A stretch of 64,000 nt of DNA from contig RDEW01000031.1 in NCBI GenBank assembly GCA_011109175.1, forward strand, positions 124,001-188,000. Reading direction: 5' to 3'. Under the pieces are notes generated by a model. The model had not been told where the DNA came from. It saw only the letters and a list, made by a program, of their open reading frames with translations, and ran no database searches. The translations under genes were made by a program, and so were the position numbers. How positions within the stretch are numbered: the first letter of the stretch is position 1; every line of letters begins with the position of its first letter. Below, one piece after another: positions 3,813-53,938 of this stretch. Source of the stretch: Dicyema japonicum (taxonomy: Eukaryota > Animalia > Dicyemida).

Positions 3813-4940
3813 TTAATCACAAACAGCAGTACATCGATCGTAGTTTGCGCGAAAATTTCTTCCCCTAAAATTACCAACTATTAGAATACTTGAATGTATT
3901 CATCGGGATTAAACTTTTTGTCACGAATTGTCTGAAAATTGAGACTCTGAATATTATTTTATCAATTGTACTTTGAAAAATGGATGTTTAAGTACATCAT
4001 TATCATTTAAGGATCCTAGTCTACCGTGAGGGCATTTAATTAATAACTGAGATTCAAAAAATTCAAAACCTTTGATATTAAATTCTTACATTTCACATTC
4101 GTCAACATAGGGAAGCGAGGATTGAGATGTAGAATATCCCAGTAAAGTTCGCGAGTATTAGTTTTAAAATAAGGAAGCTAAAATTAATAAAGTAAAGTAT
4201 ACTTTCCCAAAATACATGTAATAAATTATTATACCAAGGGACCACCAATCCGCACCATAGGAAATTCTATTGTAGCTTAGTATTTCGGGTGAAAAATAGT
4301 GAGGTGATCCATAGTTTGCATGACAAAATGATTTACGACTTTCGTTTATTTTACTCAAATGAAAATTAGTTATTTTCACATAACCGTCTGTCCCCAACAT
4401 TAGATTCTGTAACTTAAGATCGCTAAAATATATTAAAATAAAAAACCTATGGATGATCTTGTTAGCATGCAAAAACTCTACTCCAAGAGCTACACACGCT
4501 GAGTAAAACTTTATTTGTCTATAAGAGAAGCGTTGTTTTTGCATTAAGCGTTCTAAATCACCCATCTGCATGTACTCCATGGGAAAGAAGAGATTAGACT
4601 AACAATTAATAAAATCCCAACATTATCGAAATAATGACTTTAAGTGGACAAAAAATTTATTATTTGTTCTTGTGACTAAATCAAATACTTTCACTTCATT
4701 TATTATTCTTTGCAAGTCGACTGGAGGAGTAAGACTCTGAAGTCTCACTGCGCATTTGTTTAGGTTTTTATCTTTGCACAAATCAACCTATTTATTAATA
4801 TAATGTCACTTTTCCAAATGATCCATTTCCAATTTCTTTTATTATTGTGTAATCAGTTGGGGTTGATCTAATTAAATATATTATATTGTAAACTTTTCAA
4901 TTTGCAAATTTTGTTCGTTCAATAAATTTTTCAAACTCAT
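3813..4940 (-). CDS. AGC-family (PKC/PKN-like) kinase-domain protein, multi-exon, possibly a pseudokinase or pseudogene
   Basis: Spliced reading gives EIGNGSFGK, MEYMQMGDL, HR/DLKLQN, GSPHYFSPE, DWWSLG and RLGS..DDVLKHPFF, with GT-AG introns of about 22-26 nt. Confidence 0.8.
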
Positions 4941-5074: not shown

Positions 5075-5335
5075 ATTCCAAAGACCAAGGGTAACCAAAC
5101 TACTAACTCCTTGATCCGGAGTCGTTCCAGCGTTCCAGAACTTGTCTCCAGGAAACTACATTGTCCCTAGGGGAAAGATTAGTTGGATCCTCTTGATGCC
5201 GGACAAGCATTGGGCGTCTCCTCATTAAGGTGGATTCAATGACGTCATCGGAGGTAAGGAATATAATTTTTGACAAACTAGCCACATAGCACCAAATGGC
5301 GCTACGCAGCCATTGTGGAAGGAATAAAAATTTAT
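5075..5335 (-). mobile_element. Short non-autonomous Ingi-derived element with HDV-like fold
   Basis: Head and pseudoknot are homologous to 38230-38420, 31550-31670 and 46343-46654. The 3' end ggatca...ttagt...cttggt..ttggaataa resembles the Ingi-like tail at 26006-26069. Confidence 0.6.
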
Positions 5336-19959: not shown

Positions 19960-20280
19960 TCATTATTAATAACCCCTGATACACCGAGAAAAAAGTTAAC
20001 AGTTAAAATTAATTGTATCCAGTTTCCACTGTCACAGAAACAGCCCTTACAATGACCCACAAGTCCATCCAGTATCTGCATAAAAGGTGGAAGACGTCCA
20101 TTCCTTACAGTTATGGAAACCCCTCCAATGGAGTGGGAGAGAGAAATGATCCTTTTTCGTGCAACCCTGGCACAGGGGCGCCACAGATGGATCACATGAC
20201 GCCACTCTAGTAGGAAAGAGAAGAGGAGGAACAGATAAAACAAACAGAAATATTTAGCCAATTACCAGCATTAACATAGC
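19960..20280 (-). mobile_element. Short non-autonomous Ingi-derived element with HDV-like fold
   Basis: Closely similar to 46343-46654 along its length; the tail ctcggtgtatcaggggttattaat matches the Ingi-like tail. Confidence 0.7.
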
Positions 20281-20729: not shown

Positions 20730-23201
20730 AGTACTATTCTGCGTTACGTATCCTATAAAACAATCAATAGCGTTACGTATCCTATTCAATTCCACACAAT
20801 CCAGTATGGCTCCTGAGAGGCTTCGCTCTCGTGTCAGGAGGAAATTGATGGAGGGCGATCTTACTGCTGCAGTTCGAACTGTTTGTACGGATTCTGACCC
20901 GGTGAAAGCCACTCAGGAGACACTCTGTATATTGGGACAGAAACATCCTCCTGAACCAGAAGACTTTTGTAAACCTGTTCGTCCAGAACAATCTATGCAT
21001 GATATTTCCACTTCAGCCATTTACAACGCTCTTTGTTCTTTCCGAAGAAGTAGCAGTGGAGGAGTTGACGGTCTCAAACCTGGCCATCTGTCAGGACTTG
21101 GTGTCCCATTCTGTCGGTAGGCCTGGATCGCTACTCTTGGAGCGAACCCGGGATCTCGTAGCTCGCATGCTTTCCGGAAACGTTTCCGATTTTGGTCGGA
21201 ATCTCCTCTTTTCGGCGAATCTAACGGGCCTTGGAAAGAAAGATGGTGGTATTCGCCCCATTGCAATTGGAAACGTATTTCGACGTTTATCCGCAAAAAT
21301 GGCTTGTCGTTTTGTTATCTCCCGAATTTCAGCCGAATTTTGTCCTTCGCAGCTTGGTGTCGGAATCAATGGCGGCTGTGAAGCTGGGATCCACGCAGTG
21401 AGAGAATTTGTGTCACAATCAGCTGAATTGAATGTTGAGGACAGAGTTTTATTCAAATTGGACCTCCGGAATGCCTTCAATTCAGTCAGAAGGTACACCG
21501 TCCTTGATACCTGTAGGAGGAGGATTCCTCAGATTTATCCCTTTGTATATCTCGCGTATTCGGATCCATCCCCTCTTGTTTTTGGCAGTGCAATTATTTC
21601 GTCCGGATCCGGAGTTCAACAGGGGGACCCACTCGGTCCTCTTCTATTTTCCTTGTCTATCGACCATATTGCCCAGGACCGTTGCACTCCACTGAACGTC
21701 TGGTATCTGGACGATTGTATTCTCGGTGGAAGTCCCGATGATATTCTCTCCAAAGTTGCGTCGATCAGAAGTTTGTGTGGAAAAATCGGTCTGGAATTTA
21801 ACAATGAAAAGTGCGAAGCAATTAATCTGAATTTGAGTTCCGATTCATTCTACCTTTTTCATAGAAAACTCTGCGAAATCATCCCAGGGGTTAGGGAGAC
21901 TCATATTGATTCTCTCGACTTCCTTGGGTGTGGGATTTTGGTAAACCGGGTGAGGGAGTTATTGGAAGGCAAGAGGACTAATTTACGTCAATATGCCGAC
22001 AGGATGAGTTTTTTGGATTGTCATGTCGCCTTTTTTATGCTGAAGAATTGTCTCCTTCTCCCAAAACTCCTTTTTATTCTACGGGGATCCCCATGCTACG
22101 CCGAAAAAGACCTTCTATCGTTAATTGATATGGATATCCGGTCAACGATGGGGTCCATTCTTAATGTTTGTTTTGATGATTTCGGATGGTTACAGGCCTC
22201 ACTCCCTGTAGCCTGCGGTGGTTTGGGTCTTTCTCTTCCTTCGGACGTTGCTTTGGGCGCCTATTTATCTTCGTTCGGCTCGTCAAGGCGTTTAGTGGAT
22301 ACGGTCCTTCACTCTACTTCCGGACTAAACGTACCGCTGACGCCGTCGGGAGCCTGGGATGAATGGATGAATTTGTACCTAAATGCTCCGGTCAATTGTG
22401 ATAAGCAAAAGTCCTATTTGTTTTGTGTCTTCGAAAAGAAGAAAGAGTCCCTTGAAAAGACGGAAGATATAAGAAGGCTTGCCTGCCTCAAAACAGCCAG
22501 TTGTCACTCGACGGGGGCCTGGATGAACGCTTTTCCATCTGCCGAAATTGGAAACCTGTTGGATGATGAGGCTGTGAGAATAGCTACCTCGCTTCGTCTT
22601 GGTCTTAAATTGTGTGCCGAAAGAAAATGCCGCTGTGGACGTTGGATCGATCCTTTTGGTTATCATCCCTTGTCATGCAAGATGAGTGCGGGTCGTTTCC
22701 CCAGGCACTCCTGTCTTAACATGACATTAAAGAATTCCCTTGCCTCTGCTGGACACCATTGCCTGTTAGAACCTGCTGGTCTTTCCGAAACGATGGAAAA
22801 CGCCCTGATGGGATGACGACTTTTCCATTCGCCAACGGACGAAACCTGATCTGGGACGCGACGTGTGTTGATACTTATTCCCCGTCTAATTTGGTTGCTT
22901 CTGCTTCAGACCCAGGACATGCTTCGAAGCAGGCCGAGGAACGAAAGAGGAGGAAGTACCAGAGAATTTCGGAGGAGTATATATTTGTTCCATTCGCGGT
23001 GGAAACGTCAGGAATCCTTGGCCCCCAAGCAGATGAGTTGGTTCGTAAGATCGGCTCCATGATTCAAGCTGTGACCAAGGATCCGCGAGAGACTGGTTGG
23101 TTCCGAGAACGTATCTCGTTGGCTATTGTTAGGGGAAATAGCATGGCCATTCAGATGCCTTAATTTAATTTTTATTCATTTGATTTGAATTAACACTTCT
23201 T

Positions 23202-23232
<31 letters not shown>
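20730..23232 (+). mobile_element. CRE-clade non-LTR retrotransposon, 5'-truncated, two frameshifts, poly(A) tail
   Basis: RT (KLDLRNAFNSV, GVQQGDPLGP, WYLDD), a CRCG..D..G.H.LSC zinc knuckle, RLE (KRPDG, IWDAT, PFAVETSG) and a 27-A tail at 23206-23232. Confidence 0.95.
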
Positions 23233-23234
<2 letters not shown>

Positions 23235-23383
23235 AATTAGGAGAAAAATAACGATAAATAATGGAGTTAAGTACTATATGTTCGCATTTCTAATAACTAT
23301 TAGTAGTATCCAAAAGCTTTGTCAAGCGATCCCTAATATACAATTTGGGATTGGGGATTAATTCCTTGATCCGACATTAGCGT

Positions 23384-26070
23384 GGCGCATGCGGTTTACC
23401 TGTTGTTGTGTTGGCGCCCGGTGCAAGTTTTGCACAAAAAGAACCGTTTGAACTTCTCCACCCCTTTACGTCTTTTGGAAGGGTGGCCTACCAATTTCGT
23501 CGTTCCCAATTTGCTACTCCCGGCTGGAGACATCAGACTTAACCCTGGTCCTGATTCCACGTTGGTCATTCTCCAACTCAATGTCAATGGAATCCGTAAT
23601 TAAAGTACTGGAGCTACATTCCCTCTTGGCCCGTTTGAAAGTGGACATTGCCATTATTCAGGAATTCTAAACTCTCCAGGTCATCCGCCACCCCACGCAT
23701 CCCTGGCTACAATATACTCCGAAAGGACCAGACATGAAGTCTCGGTGGAGGATTATTGACATATTTTTAGGGAGGGTCTTTTGTTCACCGATGTCACCTC
23801 GTTTGTATCTTCTCTTTGCGAAGGAGACCCTATTCTGGAGCAAATTTATATTGAAGTTCCTTTCTCACCCTCAAGACGTTTTACACTGTGCAATATTTAT
23901 ATCCCACCTCAGAGTTCGTCGACTTAAAGATCTGGTATTATGCGGCGACCTAAATGCCAAACATCCACTCTGGCTCCGGACACAATCAGCCTTTCATTAC
24001 TTAATGATTTGACTATCCTCAATGACCCGGACGCTTACACAAAGACCCCGACCCGCAGAAAGAACAGTCCAAATCCTCTGACCTGTTTCTCTGCTCTCCT
24101 TTCTAGGGCTGGATATATTTCATAAAATGTTCGTTATGGTTTCTCAAGCGACCATAACCTCATTGTGTTGAAACTTAGAAGGCTTACTTGTTCACTTTGT
24201 TGTTCTACAAAGTTCAAAAAATTATTTGAAGGCAGACTGGCAAGTTTTCAGGGCCTATGTGGACAATAGTCTGTTTTATCTTACTATGGATAATTGTACA
24301 GTAGAGAAGACGGCCAAGATTCTGTCTGCTATCGTTTTGAAAGCTGATAAATTATTTTATACCTCTCGCCTTACAAGATGTTCAATCCAAAGATTATTAT
24401 CGCAAATTGTGTCACTCATAAAGAAACGAGATGCGCTTGAAGAGAAACAGGACGCAGTTCAATAACTCCTTTAATTCTATACGTTCACTGAATATCAAAT
24501 TATCTGAACTTATCGAATTAACAAGAGACTCAAATAGAGCCGTCTAGTTGGACGACTGTCACAAAAACTCGTGCCACATTTTTGGAAAACGCTATAAGAA
24601 GAATCAATAGCCTTATCAATGAGGAGGACTGCGGTACTGAGGCCGTTACCCGCAACGCTTCGGAACCCACTCGCATACTTGCAAACAAGATTATAAGTAC
24701 TACGTACCGATCAGTCATAAAGATTTACCATACGCTACCTAATATAGGGAGAATTCCCTGATTACGCCAATTCTAAAGCCTGGAAAACCAAAAGACGTTC
24801 CCTCTTCTTACCGCTTCGTCTCACTAACTTGTGTTTTTTTTCAAAAGTGCTGGAAAAAACTTGTATTAATGCATATCTCTCCGTTCTACAACTACCAAAA
24901 TTTTAACATCAGGGCAGACCGTTCTACACGACTCATTTGGGTTCTATCTCACAGTTTATTACTGACGGCTTCAACATGAGAACACACTTACGGACGGCCT
25001 TAGTATCCATCGATATGCAGAAGGCCTTTGATTCTGTTCCGAGAAAACTCTTAACGCATAAGATTTTTAATTCGAACTTACATCCTAATTTCAAGCTTAG
25101 GCTGGAAAATTTCTTAACTGTGCGACGCAGAAGGGTCCGGATTGACAAACCACTTCAAAAGCAAGACTACTCCCCAATGGGGTCCTGCAAGGATCCCCTT
25201 TATCTCCTCTCCTTTTCAACCTATTTCTACATGACCTACCTACTACCAATGACCAGGACACTATGTTTTTATCCTATATGGACGACTTAATTATCGTTGA
25301 CAGAGATAAATCTTCTTCCGTGGCTGAAGCAATTGTTTAGTCACGCCTAAAACCGGGTATGTGACTGGCTATCTGCAAATATGTTATGTGTCAGCATCTG
25401 AATCTCATTTCACCATTTTCATTACTGATAGAATATTTAAGGATAGACTCGAACTGTTTTTGGAGATACTTCTATTCCTTCCTCTACGCGGACCCAGAAA
25501 ATCGTTGGGGTAGTTTTCGACTCTCTGATGACGTTCTCGAGTCATGTAAAGGAGGTGCTTGCCAAGGATCTTCGGAAATAGAACATTTTTAAAAGCGATC
25601 ATAAAGAAGAGCTTTTCTCCCCTGCTGCTTGCGTCAACAAGGTCTACCAACAAGTCATTGTTCCTACTATTGAATATGTTTGCTCCGCCTGGAGATTTGC
25701 CATTCCCTTTTCGAGAATTGATCGTTTGAACTCTCTCTGGCGGAAAATTATGCACCACACTGACATCTCCATTGGCGGCCTCGTTTCTGATGAGGCGACG
25801 TTGAAGAATAGCCAGGGTTTCCTACGTTTTTGCAAGGAACTGAGAAACCCATTCAAGGAAAAGGTGGCCCATGCAGAGGAAATTCGGTCGATTATAAAAA
25901 AGTGCACGCCGATTGAATTCATATGCAGAAGGAAGAGAAGGCGCTTCTGGAATGCGTTTGGGTCATCAAAAGATCAGGCGAAGAGAGTTCGGATGTGTTG
26001 GAGCTGGGATCACCTAATTAGTTAGTTTTGACCTATCTTTCTTGGTGGTCTTGGAGTTAAACAAATACAA
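23384..26070 (+). mobile_element. Degenerate Ingi-like LINE: HDV-like fold, 2A-like motif, APE, RT, 3' tail
   Basis: LLLPAGDIRLNPGP followed by VILQLNVNG, IAIIQE, LCGDLNAKH, SIDMQKAFDSV and YMDD-like RT remnants; family tail at 26006-26069. Confidence 0.8.
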
Positions 26071-28664: not shown

Positions 28665-30831
28665 ATGTGTGACGGCAGTTTTCAATTAGACGAAGACCAA
28701 TACAGGAAACAAATTCAAAAGAAAAATCCACCATATCATTGTCCTCTTCAAGGATGCAGGACGACATACAACAGCTTAGAAGGATTTAAAATGCACTATA
28801 AAAATATTCACAATCTGGAAATTGGTAGATAAATTTATATTAATTTAAAAGAAAAGCAAAAAAGATTTAAAATTAATCCCGATAATGTAAGGACAAGAAT
28901 GACCTTTGAAGAGTCTCAGCGATTTGTAGAATTTGATTGTTCTGGAACATTAAGGAGGGTAAGCATCTTCGACGAGCTGCCTTTGAAATTGACTGGCGAA
29001 CCGAAAGCAATTTTTAAAATAAAATTTTTTAGAAATTAAATTTTGTCATTCCGAAGATCTCAGTTGAACCTGTGGAACTGTATAAATATGAGAAAATGTC
29101 AAATCTTCATTACGATATTGATGAGCAGGTTTATTATGGTCTGAAATGACAGGATTTGTGTTGGTTAAAAATAATGAATGACAAGGGCGTGGAAATAAGC
29201 GAAGGTGAGTTCAGGCGAGTAATGGAATGGCTGGAGAAGGAGTGCAAGGTATAATATTTAACAAACCTGCAGAGAGGGTCGTCAAATGCTTACGGAGAAG
29301 ATGCATTCTGTGCGGTTTGTATGGAGGGAAGCTCATGTTGCACAAATTCAATCGTATTTTGTGACCGTTGTAATTTATCCGTTCATCAAGACTGTTATGG
29401 AATTCCTCATATTCCAGAAGGTCCTTGGATTTGTAATTATTGCCTTGAAATGCCTGACTCCACTCCCACGTGTTGTCTCTGTCCAAATCAGGGTGGTGCT
29501 GTTAAAAAGTGTATGGAAAACGACAGTTGGGCTCACATTCTTTGTGCACTGTTTATTCCCAATATTACCTTCGGAGATCATACTCTTATGCAACCGATAA
29601 AAGGTGTTAACGGAAGTTTTCGACGGCTCACGTGCTGCATCTGTAAATCAAAAGACGTCGGAATTTCGATTCAATGCTGTAAGGGATGTTGCTTCAGAGC
29701 ATTTCACGTCACGTGCGCTCAGAAATCAAACTTTACTCTTGAAATGAAAATTTCTGGCAGTTCTAATGTAAAGTTGCTTGCATTTTGTGACAAACATTCT
29801 ATCAACAGTACCCGGGAAAGTTCGCCCACAACAAGGAAATTTAGTATTGCTGTTCGACCCAAAGAGAACTCGAAATTTCCTCCGCCTTTGGTAATTCCTC
29901 AAATATCTCCAAGAAAGTATTGATGTAAATAAATATGCTAGAATTGATTTGATGAAATTGAAAATGCATGAAAAATACAAGGATGAAGCTTATTCCAAAA
30001 TATATTCCTATTGGACTATCAAACGGATGTGTCGCTCAGGAATGCCGCTGATTCGCAGACTTAGTTTATTAGACAGTAATTTGAATGTTGAACATGTTTC
30101 TCCAACAAAAGAAGCTTCTGACAAAAAAGAATCTTCTTCAAAATCGAATTCATTTGGAATTATCGTTAAATGCCGACATAATGCTGAAAAGCTGAGATTG
30201 TTGGTTGAGCTTGTAAAGAGAAGAGAAAAGCTGAAATTTGACCTTGTTTTTTTAATTTCTCAGTTTTAGATTCAAAATTGCCAGAAAATATCCGAAGTTT
30301 GCCTACGACCTTCCTTCAATTTCTTTGCAAGTTTGCTAGAAAAACTCGTGGCCTTGGATTCCAAATATGAAATCTTAAAAATCCTGTAAATGTATGAGTT
30401 TTGATTTGACATTTATGCAGATTCCTGAATATCTTGAAATTATTAAAAATCCAATGGATTTTTCAACTATGAAGAAAAACTTAAAAAGTGGAAAATATTT
30501 AAATCTCAAAACCTTTTTATCCGATTATCGTTTGATTTTAAGCAACTGTTTATCTTTCAATGGTAAAAATACAATTTTTCACAGAGAAGCAAGTAAACAG
30601 CGTAAATTGGTTGCGAATTAAATTTATTTGTAGAGTTCTAGCATTATTAATGAAGCTGTTCGGTCTTATAAAAGCATTATGAGTCATGGCGGTTTTAAGA
30701 TAAGCAATGATATTATCCATCACTTACCTGAAATTGGTGATGAATTCACAAGTAATACAAATTTTGAAATTGAATCGATTACTCCGCAGAATCCCAAACG
30801 AAAATTAACTGATTATTTTCTAAATTCATGA
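28665..30831 (+). CDS. BRPF1: Peregrin/BRPF-family bromodomain-PHD protein, multi-exon
   Basis: N-terminal C2H2 finger (PPYHCPLQGC...H...H), EFDCSGTLRRVSIFD, PZP module (CAVC...CDRCNLSVHQDCYG...CCLCPNQGGA...HVTCA), RHNAEKLRLLVELVKRREKLK and bromodomain (YLEIIKNPMDFSTM...NCLSFN). Confidence 0.93.
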
Positions 30832-31089: not shown

Positions 31090-32800
31090 TCTATCTGTTG
31101 ATTTAATTTGTGAGACTGTCATCCCACTGACTCTGCCGAACGGATTAAGCTGGATAAATATTCTGCGTTTGAGTACCGTTTCGTCCAATCGCGTTTGAGA
31201 CTTGATGTGTCTGTCACTAGAGGTGTTTTTGGAAGTCCTAGCTCTTTAAGTTGAAAGATTTTCGGGAGCGGCGTTAGTTCCTTGGACGCATCGGAATTGC
31301 TATCATTAACGGGAATTCTCACTGTCTCATGGCAGCTGGTCTCTGATTTGTTTCTTTCTAATAATAAATTTGAAATTTGTTTATTTCTGACAGCTCTAAA
31401 ATAAAAAAATTGAGGAAAAAGTCAAAAGATATTTGTCTAATTACTCCGGATATGTCTGAAATGTTTTATCGAGTTCGCCAGTCGGATTGAAACGTATCCT
31501 TTCCAAGTATTCTCCATTTTGGAACCCGTTTGTTGGATTAAGAAAGAAAAAGATTATTTTAGGATACCGGCCAGGTATTGGGCGTCTCTTGAGTTAGGTG
31601 AATCTAATGACGTCTCTAGGAATTGAATAAGCAAAGAGCAGATTAGAAATCTTTCGACCAGCAGGTTGTGAGTAAGAATCGAATCCACAGGTATACTTAT
31701 CATCAGTATTGACATGCCCTGGAATAAATTGATGAAATCAACTCAGATACATCGAAAAAACGTTACCAGTTAAAAATTGATTAAAACGTATCAAATTCCC
31801 AAGATTGTAGGAGCAGATAGTCCTCCCAATATCAAATACAATTTTATACAGAACCAACGAAAAAAGATGAATATATTAATCCTTGCAGTAATGATAATCT
31901 CTCCTATGAAGTTTGGGAGCAAATAATCCATATTTAATGCCTCTTGACACTGAGCGTCACCTAAGACAAGTGGATTACATAAATCACTCAGTAAATCGAA
32001 AAATGATAGGAAAAAGTCGATCATCCAATAGATAATTAATTAAAAAAACGCTTTTAGAAATGTTTGAACAACAAAAAATTAACTAGCCATTAATCTAACC
32101 TTCGATCAACTCATTTCTTGTTTTCAATAAGCAGAATGACAGTTATTGACTTCATTACTTCAAATAAATACATTTTCCTTACAGTAGATTTTCCATAATA
32201 GAAAAAAGAACTCCGTAATTTACTTCTTTATAAATTTCAACCTGTTGATTCTGAATTTGAAGCTTTCTCTGTGTCTCCTGTAATTGTACTTTTAGCGAAT
32301 CCACTAAATAGAATACTAGATCAAACATTTTTTATTTTTTTGATCAATAAGATTTTGAAGTTGTTTCATTCTTTCTTGGCAAGGCTGGGAGACTAATTTT
32401 GTTAAAATAAAATAAAAACACTTAAATTTCTATATTTTCTAAAATTATCTGCAATTTCCTTTAAATTTTCGACAATTTTTGAACTTGGCTTTAAAAAAAT
32501 AAAACTTGTTGCAAATCTGAGAATCCAAAGCTTTGTTCGAACTGATCTTGACATCTTCAATATTGTTTTGTCGAGAATTCCACGTTTGATTCACTTCTTT
32601 AAATTAAGGTTTAAAAAGTCTAATTTTCGAATTTCAACAGATTGTTCATCTAAATAATATTTTTGCAAACCTTTTTTATTCTGTAAGGATAATTCAGCTT
32701 TTTTAAAGTGGTTATAAACTAATATCAACATTAGAGTACGTTTAGTGTATTCTGAAATTAATTTGTCTAATTTTTTATTTAGAATTTCTATCTTCATTTC
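31090..32800 (-). CDS. Putative multi-exon gene of unknown product (coiled-coil-like N-terminus)
   Basis: Minus ORFs 32591-32797 and 31119-31322, with open segments between them separated by short GT-AG introns. Confidence 0.4.
31550..31670 (-). mobile_element. Fragment of Ingi-derived element (pseudoknot region)
   Basis: gacgtca-t-tagattc-acc...agacgcc-caa-tacctggccggta is homologous to 5184-5246. Confidence 0.55.
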
Positions 32801-35508: not shown

Positions 35509-35685
35509 AAGACTATACTTCTAGGGATCATTTCTAGAGTTTGTCTTGAGAGAACGCTTTTCTAAAGTGTTCCCACACCAAACTGTGATGATGCTGTATA
35601 CCTTTATAGCCTTTTCGTGACGCTTCGATCACTATATGGTCGAATGAAAGATCTGTCGTGGCTTTGGAGGTTTCTGAGCAGTTTG
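35509..35685 (+). ncRNA. SNORD3: U3 snoRNA
   Basis: 5' AAGACTATACTTCTAGGGATCATTTCT matches the U3 GAC box/box A'/box A. Box C' TGATGA and box D CTGA are closed by the terminal stem caaactg/cagtttg; box B-like CGTGA and two internal hairpins are present. Confidence 0.88.
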
Positions 35686-38229: not shown

Positions 38230-38420
38230 ATCGCCAAGGAACTAAATTGTCTCCTGGTGGAATGAATAGCTGGATTTTTTGCCTGCGAGGCATCGGACGT
38301 CTCCTAAGTAAGGTGGATTCATTGACGCCATTAAAGGGAGGGAAGAGAAATTTTCAACCAATTAGCCACATAGCACACAGCGCCACGAGGATGTTTAGAT
38401 TAAGCCGCCTGGTGGAATTT
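38230..38420 (-). mobile_element. Ingi-derived non-autonomous element, 5' part with HDV-like fold
   Basis: Homologous to 5160-5335. Confidence 0.6.
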
Positions 38421-45578: not shown

Positions 45579-46342
45579 TTACGATTCATTTTTACTAATG
45601 TTATATACTGAAAGCTTTATGGTTGATTAAAACCATTACGCATGTGACTAATTGAATTTTTTAATTTTTTATTCATTTGAAATTTATCAAATTAAAGCAT
45701 TATGGAATTAATGTTACAGTAGGTTATTGATGGTACCTTTTCACAATATGATGGGTTTTTTTCGACTATATAAGTAACATTTTTGATTAATTAAAAATAA
45801 ACAATCAAGTAAATTTTGAAGAGACTCAGTGTTTGAGGATTATTTTTCTTTAATTTTGTAGAGATAATTTTTTTAAAGTAAACAATACAAACATTCCATA
45901 TTTCCAATTTTAAATAGTAGAATAGTTATTGTTTTATTTTCTGTTGCGTTTTAGTCAATGCTGAGGGAGCAAATTTCATGATTGATTTATCATTAACACA
46001 AAAATATTAAATTCCGTAAATTTATGGAAAAATATTCAATTCCGTAATTATGGATATAAACTAACACTATTTCTAGAAAAAATCAATTTTTACAAGTCAC
46101 TGTGATTAAAATGCGATTTAGTTTCAGTTTTACAATTTATTTGATCAGTTAGTCGAATGGTTAATTGATCGGAAGGTATAGGTGATGACGTACCACCATT
46201 GAACTAATTGTCTACTTTTCTACATGGTAGATGAAAGTCCTTTTCCATCAAACATGACGAGGTGATGGACTCAGGATATCCGAAAATTTGAACAAAGGAG
46301 GTGTCGGATGCAAGGAGAACCCTAGTTCTAATTTCGTCGAAT

Positions 46343-46654
46343 TTATTTAATAACCCCGGATACACCGAGAAAGAAGTTAAAGTAAACAACTAATTAAGTG
46401 TATCTAGTTTCCACTTGCACAGAAACAGAGTCCATCCGGAATCAACATAAAGGGTAAAAGACGTACATACCTTCAGTTGTGGAAACCCCTCCAGTGGAAT
46501 GGGGGAGAGCAAATGATCCTTTTTTGTGCCGGCTTGGCACTGGGCGCCACCTAGACAGGTGGATCACATGACGCCACTCTAATAGGAAAAGAGAAGAGGA
46601 ACAGACGAACAAACAGAAACTTCAACCAATTAGCCACGAAGCACCACATGGCGC
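46343..46654 (-). mobile_element. Complete 312-bp non-autonomous Ingi-derived element with HDV-like fold
   Basis: TSD cgtcgaat (46335-46342 / 46655-46662). The 5' part aligns with 23384-23470 and the 3' end with the Ingi-like tail. Confidence 0.8.
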
Positions 46655-46935
46655 CGTCGAATGTGAAATTGAACGAACTTGGAAAATCATTTGTAGGAAG
46701 CTGCATGTATAAGATGATAGTTAATATGATTCTATGTATGTTGCTAATAATAATTTTTTTGAAATTTGTTCAATGATTTTTGCGTCACAATTCTTCTACG
46801 CATTAACTTTATGTCCAATTTAACATTTTTTATGATTGTTTGATTATGCATAATAACAAAATTCTGAAATTAATAGAAATTTAATTAACCAAAAATTGAT
46901 AATTCATATAAAAATACTAAAAATTTCAATCTTAA

Positions 46936-49769: not shown

Positions 49770-49843
49770 GCCCTGGTAGCTTAGTTGGTTAGAGCGTCGT
49801 GCTTATATCGCGAAGGTCGTGGGTTCGAGTCCCACTCGGGGTA
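49770..49843 (+). tRNA. trnI-UAU: tRNA-Ile(TAT), intronless
   Basis: 74-nt cloverleaf with anticodon loop CTTATAT, perfect T-stem gtggg/cccac and a downstream TTTTT terminator. Confidence 0.8.
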
Positions 49844-53864: not shown

Positions 53865-53938
53865 GCCCTGGTAGCTCAGTTGGTTAGAGCATCGTGCTAA
53901 TAACGCGAAGGTCGCGGGTTCGAACCCCACTCGGGGCA
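53865..53938 (+). tRNA. trnI-AAU: tRNA-Ile(AAT)
   Basis: 74-nt cloverleaf with anticodon loop CTAATAA, one T-stem mismatch and a T7 terminator. Confidence 0.88.

Follow-up and report, generated by a model that had tools for sequence, protein, structure and literature searches.

The window analysed here is a 64,000-nt stretch of the Dicyema japonicum genome (contig RDEW01000031.1, positions 124,001 to 188,000), and all window coordinates below count from its first letter. Its host features include a U3 snoRNA gene at 35509-35682 (77 bits), two tRNA-Ile genes at 49770-49843 and 53865-53938 (anticodons UAU and AAU), and two exons, one at 4164-4580 on the minus strand encoding a protein kinase domain fragment and one at 29321-29923 on the plus strand encoding a PHD-finger / zf-HC5HC2H fragment. 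The retroelement of main concern, copy A, lies on the minus strand and is organized as follows:

46343-46655, minus strand: SINE-like non-autonomous element, copy A, 313 bp, made up of a head, an HDV-type module and a 3' part ending TTATTAAATAA (TSD on both sides, contig depth, piles of loose ends)
46656-46662, minus strand: 5' TSD copy ATTCGAC (sequence)
46336-46342, minus strand: 3' TSD copy ATTCGAC (sequence)
46576-46655, minus strand: SINE head and pyrimidine-rich spacer, the head being GGCGCCAUGUGGUGCUUCGUGGCUAAUUGGUUGAAG with an A-box-like UGGCUAAUUGG (head likeness of copies A, B, D and E)
46514-46575, minus strand: HDV-type nested double-pseudoknot module, copy A (sequence, covariance model, covariation)
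46570-46575, minus strand: P1 5' strand GGCGUC, with putative G1 at 46575; pairs with 46543-46548, no two-sided covariation (a 7-nt version in the earlier note adds A46569)
46561-46566, minus strand: P2 5' strand UGAUCC; pairs with 46514-46519, two-sided changes among copies in 4 of 6 pairs
46549-46560, minus strand: P3 ACC/GGU around L3 UGUCUA, in the register of the LINE motifs, RCC-7nt-GGU (CCU/AGG with L3 GUCU in the earlier note)
46543-46548, minus strand: P1 3' strand GGCGCC (sequence); G46547 is A in 30-55% of genomic relatives (U.G to U-A)
46526-46540, minus strand: P4 hairpin GUGCC-AAGCC-GGCAC (minimum-energy fold; two-sided changes in 3 of 5 pairs); C46526 is the candidate catalytic C if P4 has 4 bp
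46520-46525, minus strand: J4/2, AAAAAA in copy A; G at 46525 in 83-93% of genomic relatives, giving C-G-A-A-A-A-A
46514-46519, minus strand: P2 3' strand GGAUCA (sequence and covariation)

Copy A is non-coding, carries a 7-bp TSD and belongs to a family of very high copy number, as is characteristic of SINEs. The TSD had been noted before, with the 5' end placed at 46654; the duplication is real, and the element starts at 46655. Genomic relatives came from four contig sets of one sample, aligned at 80% likeness; these hold intergenic and exon sequence alike and are therefore probably DNA. Summed contig depth is ~800-1300 in the flanks and ~0.85-5 million within 46335-46657, a roughly thousand-fold difference, and loose contig ends pile up at 46655, with 78-93 contigs per run, and at 46341/46345. 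Further piles fall at indel-rich internal sites and consist of homologous spacer that was counted as loose. The loose ends that extend past 46655 have TTAGCCGCGT as their sense-strand consensus directly before GGCGCC, and most relatives extend ~10 nt further upstream, which indicates that copy A lacks ~10 nt of the family head and that its terminal GGCGCCA is not the family terminus. A few contigs join 46655 of one SINE copy to 46346 of another with AAACCACGT between them, forming head-to-tail pairs that are rare relative to total depth.

In a search for a small-RNA origin of the head, Rfam at E<=10 matched neither the locus nor a second head to a tRNA or any other RNA family. ARAGORN, applied to the idea of a tRNA-derived head, found just the two tRNA-Ile genes elsewhere in the window. 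The head start GGCGCCAUGUGGUGCU (46640-46655) and the module start GGCGUCAUGUGAUCCA (46560-46575) are alike at 13 of 16 positions, and GUGGCGCC is present in both the head and P1b; this likeness may reflect a partial duplication, or microhomology at the junction of head and LINE 5' end. The SINE tail had no match among LINE 3' ends within the window.

The fold and its covariation

The copy A module is 62 nt long as read from the sequence, running from 46575 to 46514 on the minus strand. In the shifted register it is GGCGUC-AUG-UGAUCC-ACC-UGUCUA-GGU-GGCGCC-CA-GUGCC-AAGCC-GGCAC-AAAAAA-GGAUCA, and in the register of the earlier note the same bases divide as GGCGUCA-UG-UGAUCC-A-CCU-GUCU-AGG-UGGCGCC-CA-GUGCC-AAGCC-GGCAC-AAAAAA-GGAUCA. 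The HDV topology claimed for these positions is borne out, since the order P1-P2-P3-P1'-P4-J4/2-P2' can be read directly from the sequence; in full (P1-J1/2-P2-P3-L3-P3'-P1'-J1/4-P4-J4/2-P2'), it is the nested double pseudoknot by which HDV-like ribozymes are defined (PMC4908430). Both registers are possible, and the one-base shift, with P3 ACC/GGU, L3 UGUCUA and a 6-bp P1, fits related canonical motifs better than CCU/AGG does.

Copy A is picked up by a strict motif descriptor. Since the bare topology also gave a descriptor match in 8 of 300 sequences made by dinucleotide shuffling of the 451-nt region, a single copy alone is modest evidence. A loose descriptor gave ~18 AT-rich chance matches in the window, and helix-rich matches together with shuffle rates were relied on. 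The minimum-energy fold of the whole element chooses the internal P1a pairing, and the P4 hairpin is also predicted by minimum-energy folding. Single-sequence folding z-scores ranged from -1.2 to +0.7, the method being uninformative for a pseudoknot.

The six copies listed in the earlier note are all real, each being recovered by a covariance model at E 1e-14 to 1e-20. The same model found a seventh, degenerate and unlisted, at 31986-31918 on the minus strand (E 0.001), and its search of the window gave no other standout match beyond these seven. The minus strand given earlier as the sense strand is correct for the listed copies except 23384-23447, which sits on the plus strand. Besides copy A, the modules are:

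20141-20204, minus strand: copy B, in a SINE of A's family (element ~20264-19966), P3 deleted, J4/2 C-GAAAAA (covariance model)
23383-23452, plus strand: copy C, heading a degenerate LINE, G1 at 23384, P2 CGGUUU/GAACCG, P4 GUGCAA/UUGCAC, P3 partner absent (covariance model; no SINE-type head upstream)
5178-5247, minus strand: copy D, second SINE subfamily, L3 UUAAUGA, P4 AUGCU/GGCAU followed by C-AAGA (covariance model)
38265-38330, minus strand: copy E, D's subfamily, P2b lost (covariance model)
31545-31615, minus strand: copy F, P4 AUACC/GGUAU, P2 AGAUU/AAUCU, P3 broken (covariance model)
31918-31986, minus strand: copy G, an old and decayed member of the A/B family, P2 UAAUCC/GGAUUA, L3 UGUCUUA, 7 nt (covariance model)

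Copy B is 77% identical to A over its length, and copy F represents a third subfamily, apart from A/B/G and D/E. The covariance model was built from the six listed copies with helices P1, P3 and P4 only; P2 was left out of it, so that covariation in P2 is an independent test. P2 occurs among the copies as UGAUCC/GGAUCA, CGGUUU/GAACCG, UAAUCC/GGAUUA and AGAUU/AAUCU, and P4 as GUGCC/GGCAC, GUGCAA/UUGCAC and AUACC/GGUAU. Across the seven copies, and mostly between subfamilies, two-sided changes affect 4 of 6 pairs in P2 and 3 of 5 in P4, compared with 0 of 7 in P1 and 0 of 3 in P3; the compensatory changes reported earlier thus stand for P2 and P4, where the quoted variants exist, and not for P1 or P3. 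Standard pairs fill 81.6% of cells, against 33-46% with partners slid, and the observed covariation score was reached by none of 500 shuffles. Strands pair better with their own partners than with those of other copies in both P2 (0.94 vs 0.72) and P4 (0.97 vs 0.67). P1 has mismatches (A.C and A.A) in copies D and F, and its two strands closely resemble the palindromic sequences GGCGCC and GACGTC; copy B has no P3, the P3 strand of C is unpaired, and P3 is weakened in D, E and F. For P2 and P4 the fold is thus well supported by these copies, and for P1 and P3 it is plausible.

These two-sided changes split the subfamilies A/B/G, C, D/E and F and not the members within one family. Within the A family, the paired positions of P1a, P2 and P3 all vary by less than 10% in the genomic contigs, and at that level of invariance they offer no within-family test. 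Covariation could therefore stem from LINE lineages with an active ribozyme, and not from selection in SINEs, a point that counts against the interpretation preferred below.

The 2A-LINE of copy C and its relatives

Copy C is the only module in the window that heads a LINE, one with 2A, APE and RT motifs that are all now broken. The body of the SINE is therefore homologous to the 5' end of an autonomous LINE, which is a mark of SINEs with bodies derived from LINE 5' ends. Its diagnostic feature is:

23526-23552, plus strand: 2A-like motif GDIRLNPGP of the copy C LINE, with the APE domain (LVILQLNVNGIRN...) directly after (frame open from 23382 through the module)

Upstream of the 2A motif the frame is open from the module start (23382-23552) and has no AUG. 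In a related LINE (L016:801-900), the called ORF begins 16 nt before the ribozyme motif, so that the frame runs through the motif. One possible role of the 2A is to shed a peptide that stems from translation of the ribozyme region. The single ORF of Ingi/L1Tc has its 2A directly upstream of APE (PMC3708506), and the copy C LINE has the same layout. The comparison that was applied to the SINE heads found nothing resembling a head upstream of this LINE, and a search for its TSD found none; G1 is a candidate for its exact 5' end. Among RT relatives, an Octopus sinensis protein ranks first, with 48% identity over ~90 aa.

A second LINE, at 20788-23232 on the same strand and ~150 nt upstream of the copy C LINE, belongs to another family; it is 5'-truncated, without 2A, and ends in a poly(A) tail. 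The intact 605-aa RT ORF at 20999-22816 belongs to this truncated LINE and not to that of copy C, and its best named relatives are Octopus sinensis proteins as well, at ~45% identity.

Relatives of the copy C LINE were reached by way of its RT piece, which led to 2A-bearing LINE proteins and their relatives and from these to contigs. A strict HDV-type motif was found in all six 2A-LINE families with a recovered 5' region, just upstream of the pre-2A frame or inside it, at the following positions:

L003, 163-228
L004, 90-169
L006, 219-286 (sisters L005 and L007-L014)
L015, 638-702
L016, 817-894
L018, 2-65

Dinucleotide shuffles of the same 5' regions gave a match in 1-5% of cases (five families tested). 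Two further loci, L001 and L002 (P0143 and P0152), had no motif, their contigs lacking the pre-2A region; L019, which begins too far downstream, was left out of the six families, and L017, the Octopus sinensis locus of P0121, had no module.

P1, P2 and P4 are unrelated in sequence between these families, and MAFFT misaligns P4 and J4/2 of the six relatives. What they share is a P3 of RCC/GGU directly after P2, an L3 of 7 nt with U...C-G, and a J4/2 that starts C-A-A-A or C-G-A-A. P1.1, formed by L3 positions 2-3 with J1/4, covaries in four families (GC/GC, AC/GU, AU/AU and UC/GA). In one family (L005-L014), ten independent insertions with unrelated flanks all start exactly at G1. The L3 of L018, UUCACGU, is that of the CPEB3 ribozyme, and Rfam matches L018 to CPEB3_ribozyme alone, at 13 bits against a gathering score of 35; the spacing of copy A equals that of L018 element by element. 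None of the canonical LINE relatives had an Rfam match at gathering score. Judged by these features, the LINE motifs are almost certainly working 5' ribozymes, and the copy A fold very probably derives from a true LINE 5' ribozyme of this kind.

Catalytic features, element ends and competing explanations

The catalytic signature of the window family is incomplete. The absence of a canonical P1.1, the one or two L3-J1/4 pairs that create the second pseudoknot, was remarked on before and is confirmed, as J1/4 (CA, CG) offers nothing complementary to L3 positions 2-3, which are GU in A and UA in D and E. L3 reads UGUCUA in A, UGUCUUA in G, UUAAUGA in D, UUACUUA in E, UAACUCA in F and UGUUGUUGU in C; it thus differs per subfamily, is 6 nt long in the A family, and is without the C-G of the LINE relatives. 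Canonical L3 loops are 7 nt with U...C-G, as in HDV (UCCUCGC) and CPEB3 (UUCACGU), and CPEB3-type ribozymes function with a weak P1.1. In HDV-like ribozymes the catalytic C opens J4/2 and precedes a purine and two As; in copy A, C46526 precedes AAAAAA. A C directly after P4 can be placed in A, B, C, D and F. C46526 may alternatively close P4 with G46540, a pair that covaries to A-U in D and F, which have an extra C after it. The catalytic C is thus ambiguous, and it may be in place, given the C-G-A-A-A of the family majority, as in HDV and CPEB3. Rfam gave no ribozyme at gathering score across the whole window, or at E<=10 for 251 nt at the locus, and this miss carries little weight because the canonical LINE relatives miss too or reach just 13 bits.

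The ends of the elements bear on the same question. The fold had been described as lying at the 5' end of an Ingi-derived element, a placement that does not hold for copy A, where it lies ~80 nt inside a SINE-like element. The SINE copies have 55-80 nt upstream of G1, and this upstream sequence is kept in all six short copies of the window; heads of A, B, D and E are homologous, with likeness scores of 35-58 against a shuffle maximum of 21-25. In retrotransposons with HDV-like ribozymes, the cleavage site is the first P1 nucleotide and coincides with the 5' end of the element. A start at G1, which marks the LINE family L005-L014, is not found in these SINE copies. Among the thousands of genomic relatives, too, the 5' ends lie at 46655, and there is no pile at 46575/6 among the piles listed (the smallest listed for run X1 being 42). 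Depth over the head is ~1/3 of that over the module, so that a substantial group of copies without a head might go unnoticed, although the drop is also explained by a poorly conserved spacer and by other families that carry the module.

Could the module nevertheless still work as an HDV-like ribozyme, cleaving SINE or LINE transcripts at the internal G1 (46575) and releasing a head-less 5'-OH RNA, with the genomic heads coming from uncut RNA? The complete helix order, the 6-7 bp P1, the C followed by G-A-A-A in the family majority and the descent from canonical ribozymes would all accord with this, as would the choice of the internal P1 in the minimum-energy fold of the whole element and a head depth below module depth. 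The missing P1.1 partner, the variable L3 without C-G, the loss of P3 in B and C and its weakening in D, E and F speak against it, as do the lack of an Rfam match, the absence of a G1 start in all six short copies and the lack of a listed end pile at 46575. Moreover, if cleavage at G1 were efficient, no template would keep its head, so the retained heads argue against it. We regard this explanation as unlikely; weak activity is a possibility, as J4/2 C-G-A-A is still canonical.

The earlier note had offered another solution, in which G1 is the first base of the element and the terminal GGCGCCA pairs with P1b over a ~80-nt J1/2 to trim read-through, the internal P1a acting as a switch. The perfect 7-bp complementarity on which it was built exists in copy A, the retention of the head is what it would predict, and large J1/2 insertions are known in HDV-like ribozymes, although long unstructured ones slow them by about three orders of magnitude (PMC4908430). 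The complementarity is not shared: in D (4/7) and E (5/7) the internal strand is the better partner of P1b, in C (3/7) the terminal strand fails to pair, and most genomic relatives are ~10 nt longer upstream of GGCGCC, a palindromic sequence for which matches are cheap. The minimum-energy fold takes the internal P1a. With a terminal P1a that is specific to copy A and without covariation, the switch is not supported, and the solution as a whole is scarcely credible.

Transcription, and not RNA structure, could also be thought to maintain these sequences, with the A-box-like motif of the head and GUCAUUGAAUCCACC (P1a-P2a-P3) as a B-box-like sequence forming a polymerase III promoter. The head seems to resemble an A box and tRNA 5' ends, and UGGCUAAUUGG agrees at 10 of 11 positions with the A-box consensus. 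In D and E, UUGAAUCC, 50-70 nt downstream, is one deletion away from the B-box core. Such a promoter would leave unexplained why P2b and the P4 3' strand change with their partners, and why the fold occurs headless in the LINE copy and in the LINE relatives; Rfam also gave no tRNA match. It is very improbable as the main explanation. Almost as improbable, in our estimate, is a conditional working HDV-type ribozyme in a polymerase-III SINE, where pairing of the head through GUGGCGCC would decide between a head-bearing template and a cut 5'-OH RNA. If this were true, the rare head-to-tail arrays might also yield unit-length or circular RNAs as one fate of the cut RNA.

It is also conceivable that the module is a neutral relic, brought in by the fusion of a LINE 5' end with a SINE head and without function in the SINE, its compensatory changes predating the fusion in LINEs. 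The restriction of two-sided changes to comparisons between subfamilies is what this would produce, and the loss of P3 in B and of P2b in E fits as well; so does the density of variant sites in the contigs, which in the module (4 in 62 nt) is no lower than elsewhere in the element (13 in 173). The homologous head across SINE subfamilies instead favours one module-bearing SINE ancestor, in which case the changes in P4 and P2 took place in SINE lineages without loss of pairing. Furthermore, the 3' parts differ between subfamilies, leaving module and head as the sole parts conserved across them. On balance, a purely neutral history seems rather unlikely.

We consider it probable, with moderate confidence, that the copy A block is an HDV-type fold that stems from the 5'-terminal ribozyme of a 2A-LINE, was captured by a SINE, is now non-cleaving or feebly cleaving, and is kept as a structure. 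The source would be a 5'-terminal self-cleaving ribozyme of a LINE lineage with a 2A peptide before the endonuclease. A SINE-like family would have captured it, so that the fold now sits between a ~80-nt head and a 3' tail. Within the SINE the catalytic core would then have drifted, with P1.1 gone, L3 variable and without C-G, and P3 weakened or lost in several copies; with this part of its signature lost, the module has probably ceased to cut. The helices were retained, and a catalytic loop that is unconstrained beside retained helices suggests that the fold is kept for structure rather than catalysis. The folded module may thus serve retrotransposition, most plausibly as a handle for the machinery of a partner LINE or as an RNA stabilizer, which is the weakest step of the scheme. 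From its sequence, the SINE module is most likely a structural relic that cleaves weakly or not at all. The original proposal of a variant metazoan Ingi-family ribozyme is accordingly upheld in its topology and in its descent from LINE 5' ribozymes; it fails in the internal position of the module within a SINE, and membership of the Ingi clade is a possibility to which the 2A-APE layout points.

Known systems and the meaning of the locus

HDV-like ribozymes are established at the 5' ends of the non-LTR retrotransposons R2, RTE, LOA and L1Tc/ingi (Eickbush 2010, Ruminski 2011, Sanchez-Luque 2011; PMC3185411, PMC3774820). The window module shares with them the helix order, a G-starting P1 of 6-7 bp, a 3-bp P3 and a C followed by an A-rich J4/2, and copy C, like them, lies at a LINE 5' end and, as in L1Tc/ingi, just upstream of 2A and APE. 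Copy A differs in its internal position behind a SINE head and in having no P1.1, an unconserved L3 and no Rfam match. The Pr77 hallmark/L1TcRz of trypanosomatid LINEs and of their derivatives NARTc, RIME and SIDER (PMC4035085, PMC3383444) likewise comprises one ribozyme-bearing 5' module in an autonomous LINE and its abundant short derivatives, and activity has been lost in some Pr77 ribozyme relatives (Sanchez-Luque et al.; PMC4035085). Pr77 modules, however, lie at the extreme 5' end and double as promoters, whereas the window module is preceded by an unrelated head and occurs in an animal host.

SINE bodies derived from the 5' ends of Vingi and RTE LINEs have been described (SINE2-1_AMi, SINE2-1_ACar, Ceph-SINEs; Kojima 2018, PMC5786205), and these have the same architecture as copy A, with a head, a LINE 5'-end fragment and a tail. 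Their bodies were recognized by sequence similarity only, whereas the window body is an HDV-type fold with compensatory changes. The same work remarked that such SINEs would lose their head, and so be truncated, if the 5' ribozyme worked (PMC5786205). With the mammalian CPEB3 ribozyme (RF00622), the LINE relative L018 shares an identical L3 (UUCACGU) and the ...CUG-C-GAA junction; the majority of the window family likewise has C-G-A-A, and the window module had no RF00622 match at E<=10.

Thus HDV-like ribozymes at LINE 5' ends, SINE bodies from LINE 5' ends and a published remark on their incompatibility were all at hand, and this locus would be a case in which the two meet, a delta-type fold present in thousands of SINE copies with its helices intact and its catalytic loop decayed. 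The function of SINE central domains is an open question (PMC4824008), and the fold would give a structural identity to one of them. The series from canonical to degenerate ribozymes would also help to separate the core features needed for cleavage from those needed for folding only. Finally, the distribution of the ribozyme class may be widened, since canonical motifs undetectable with Rfam define the 5' ends of 2A-PHD-APE-RT LINEs on several unrelated contigs, and LINEs that encode 2A (mostly 2A-PHD-APE-RT) may constitute a previously unrecorded host group of HDV-like ribozymes.
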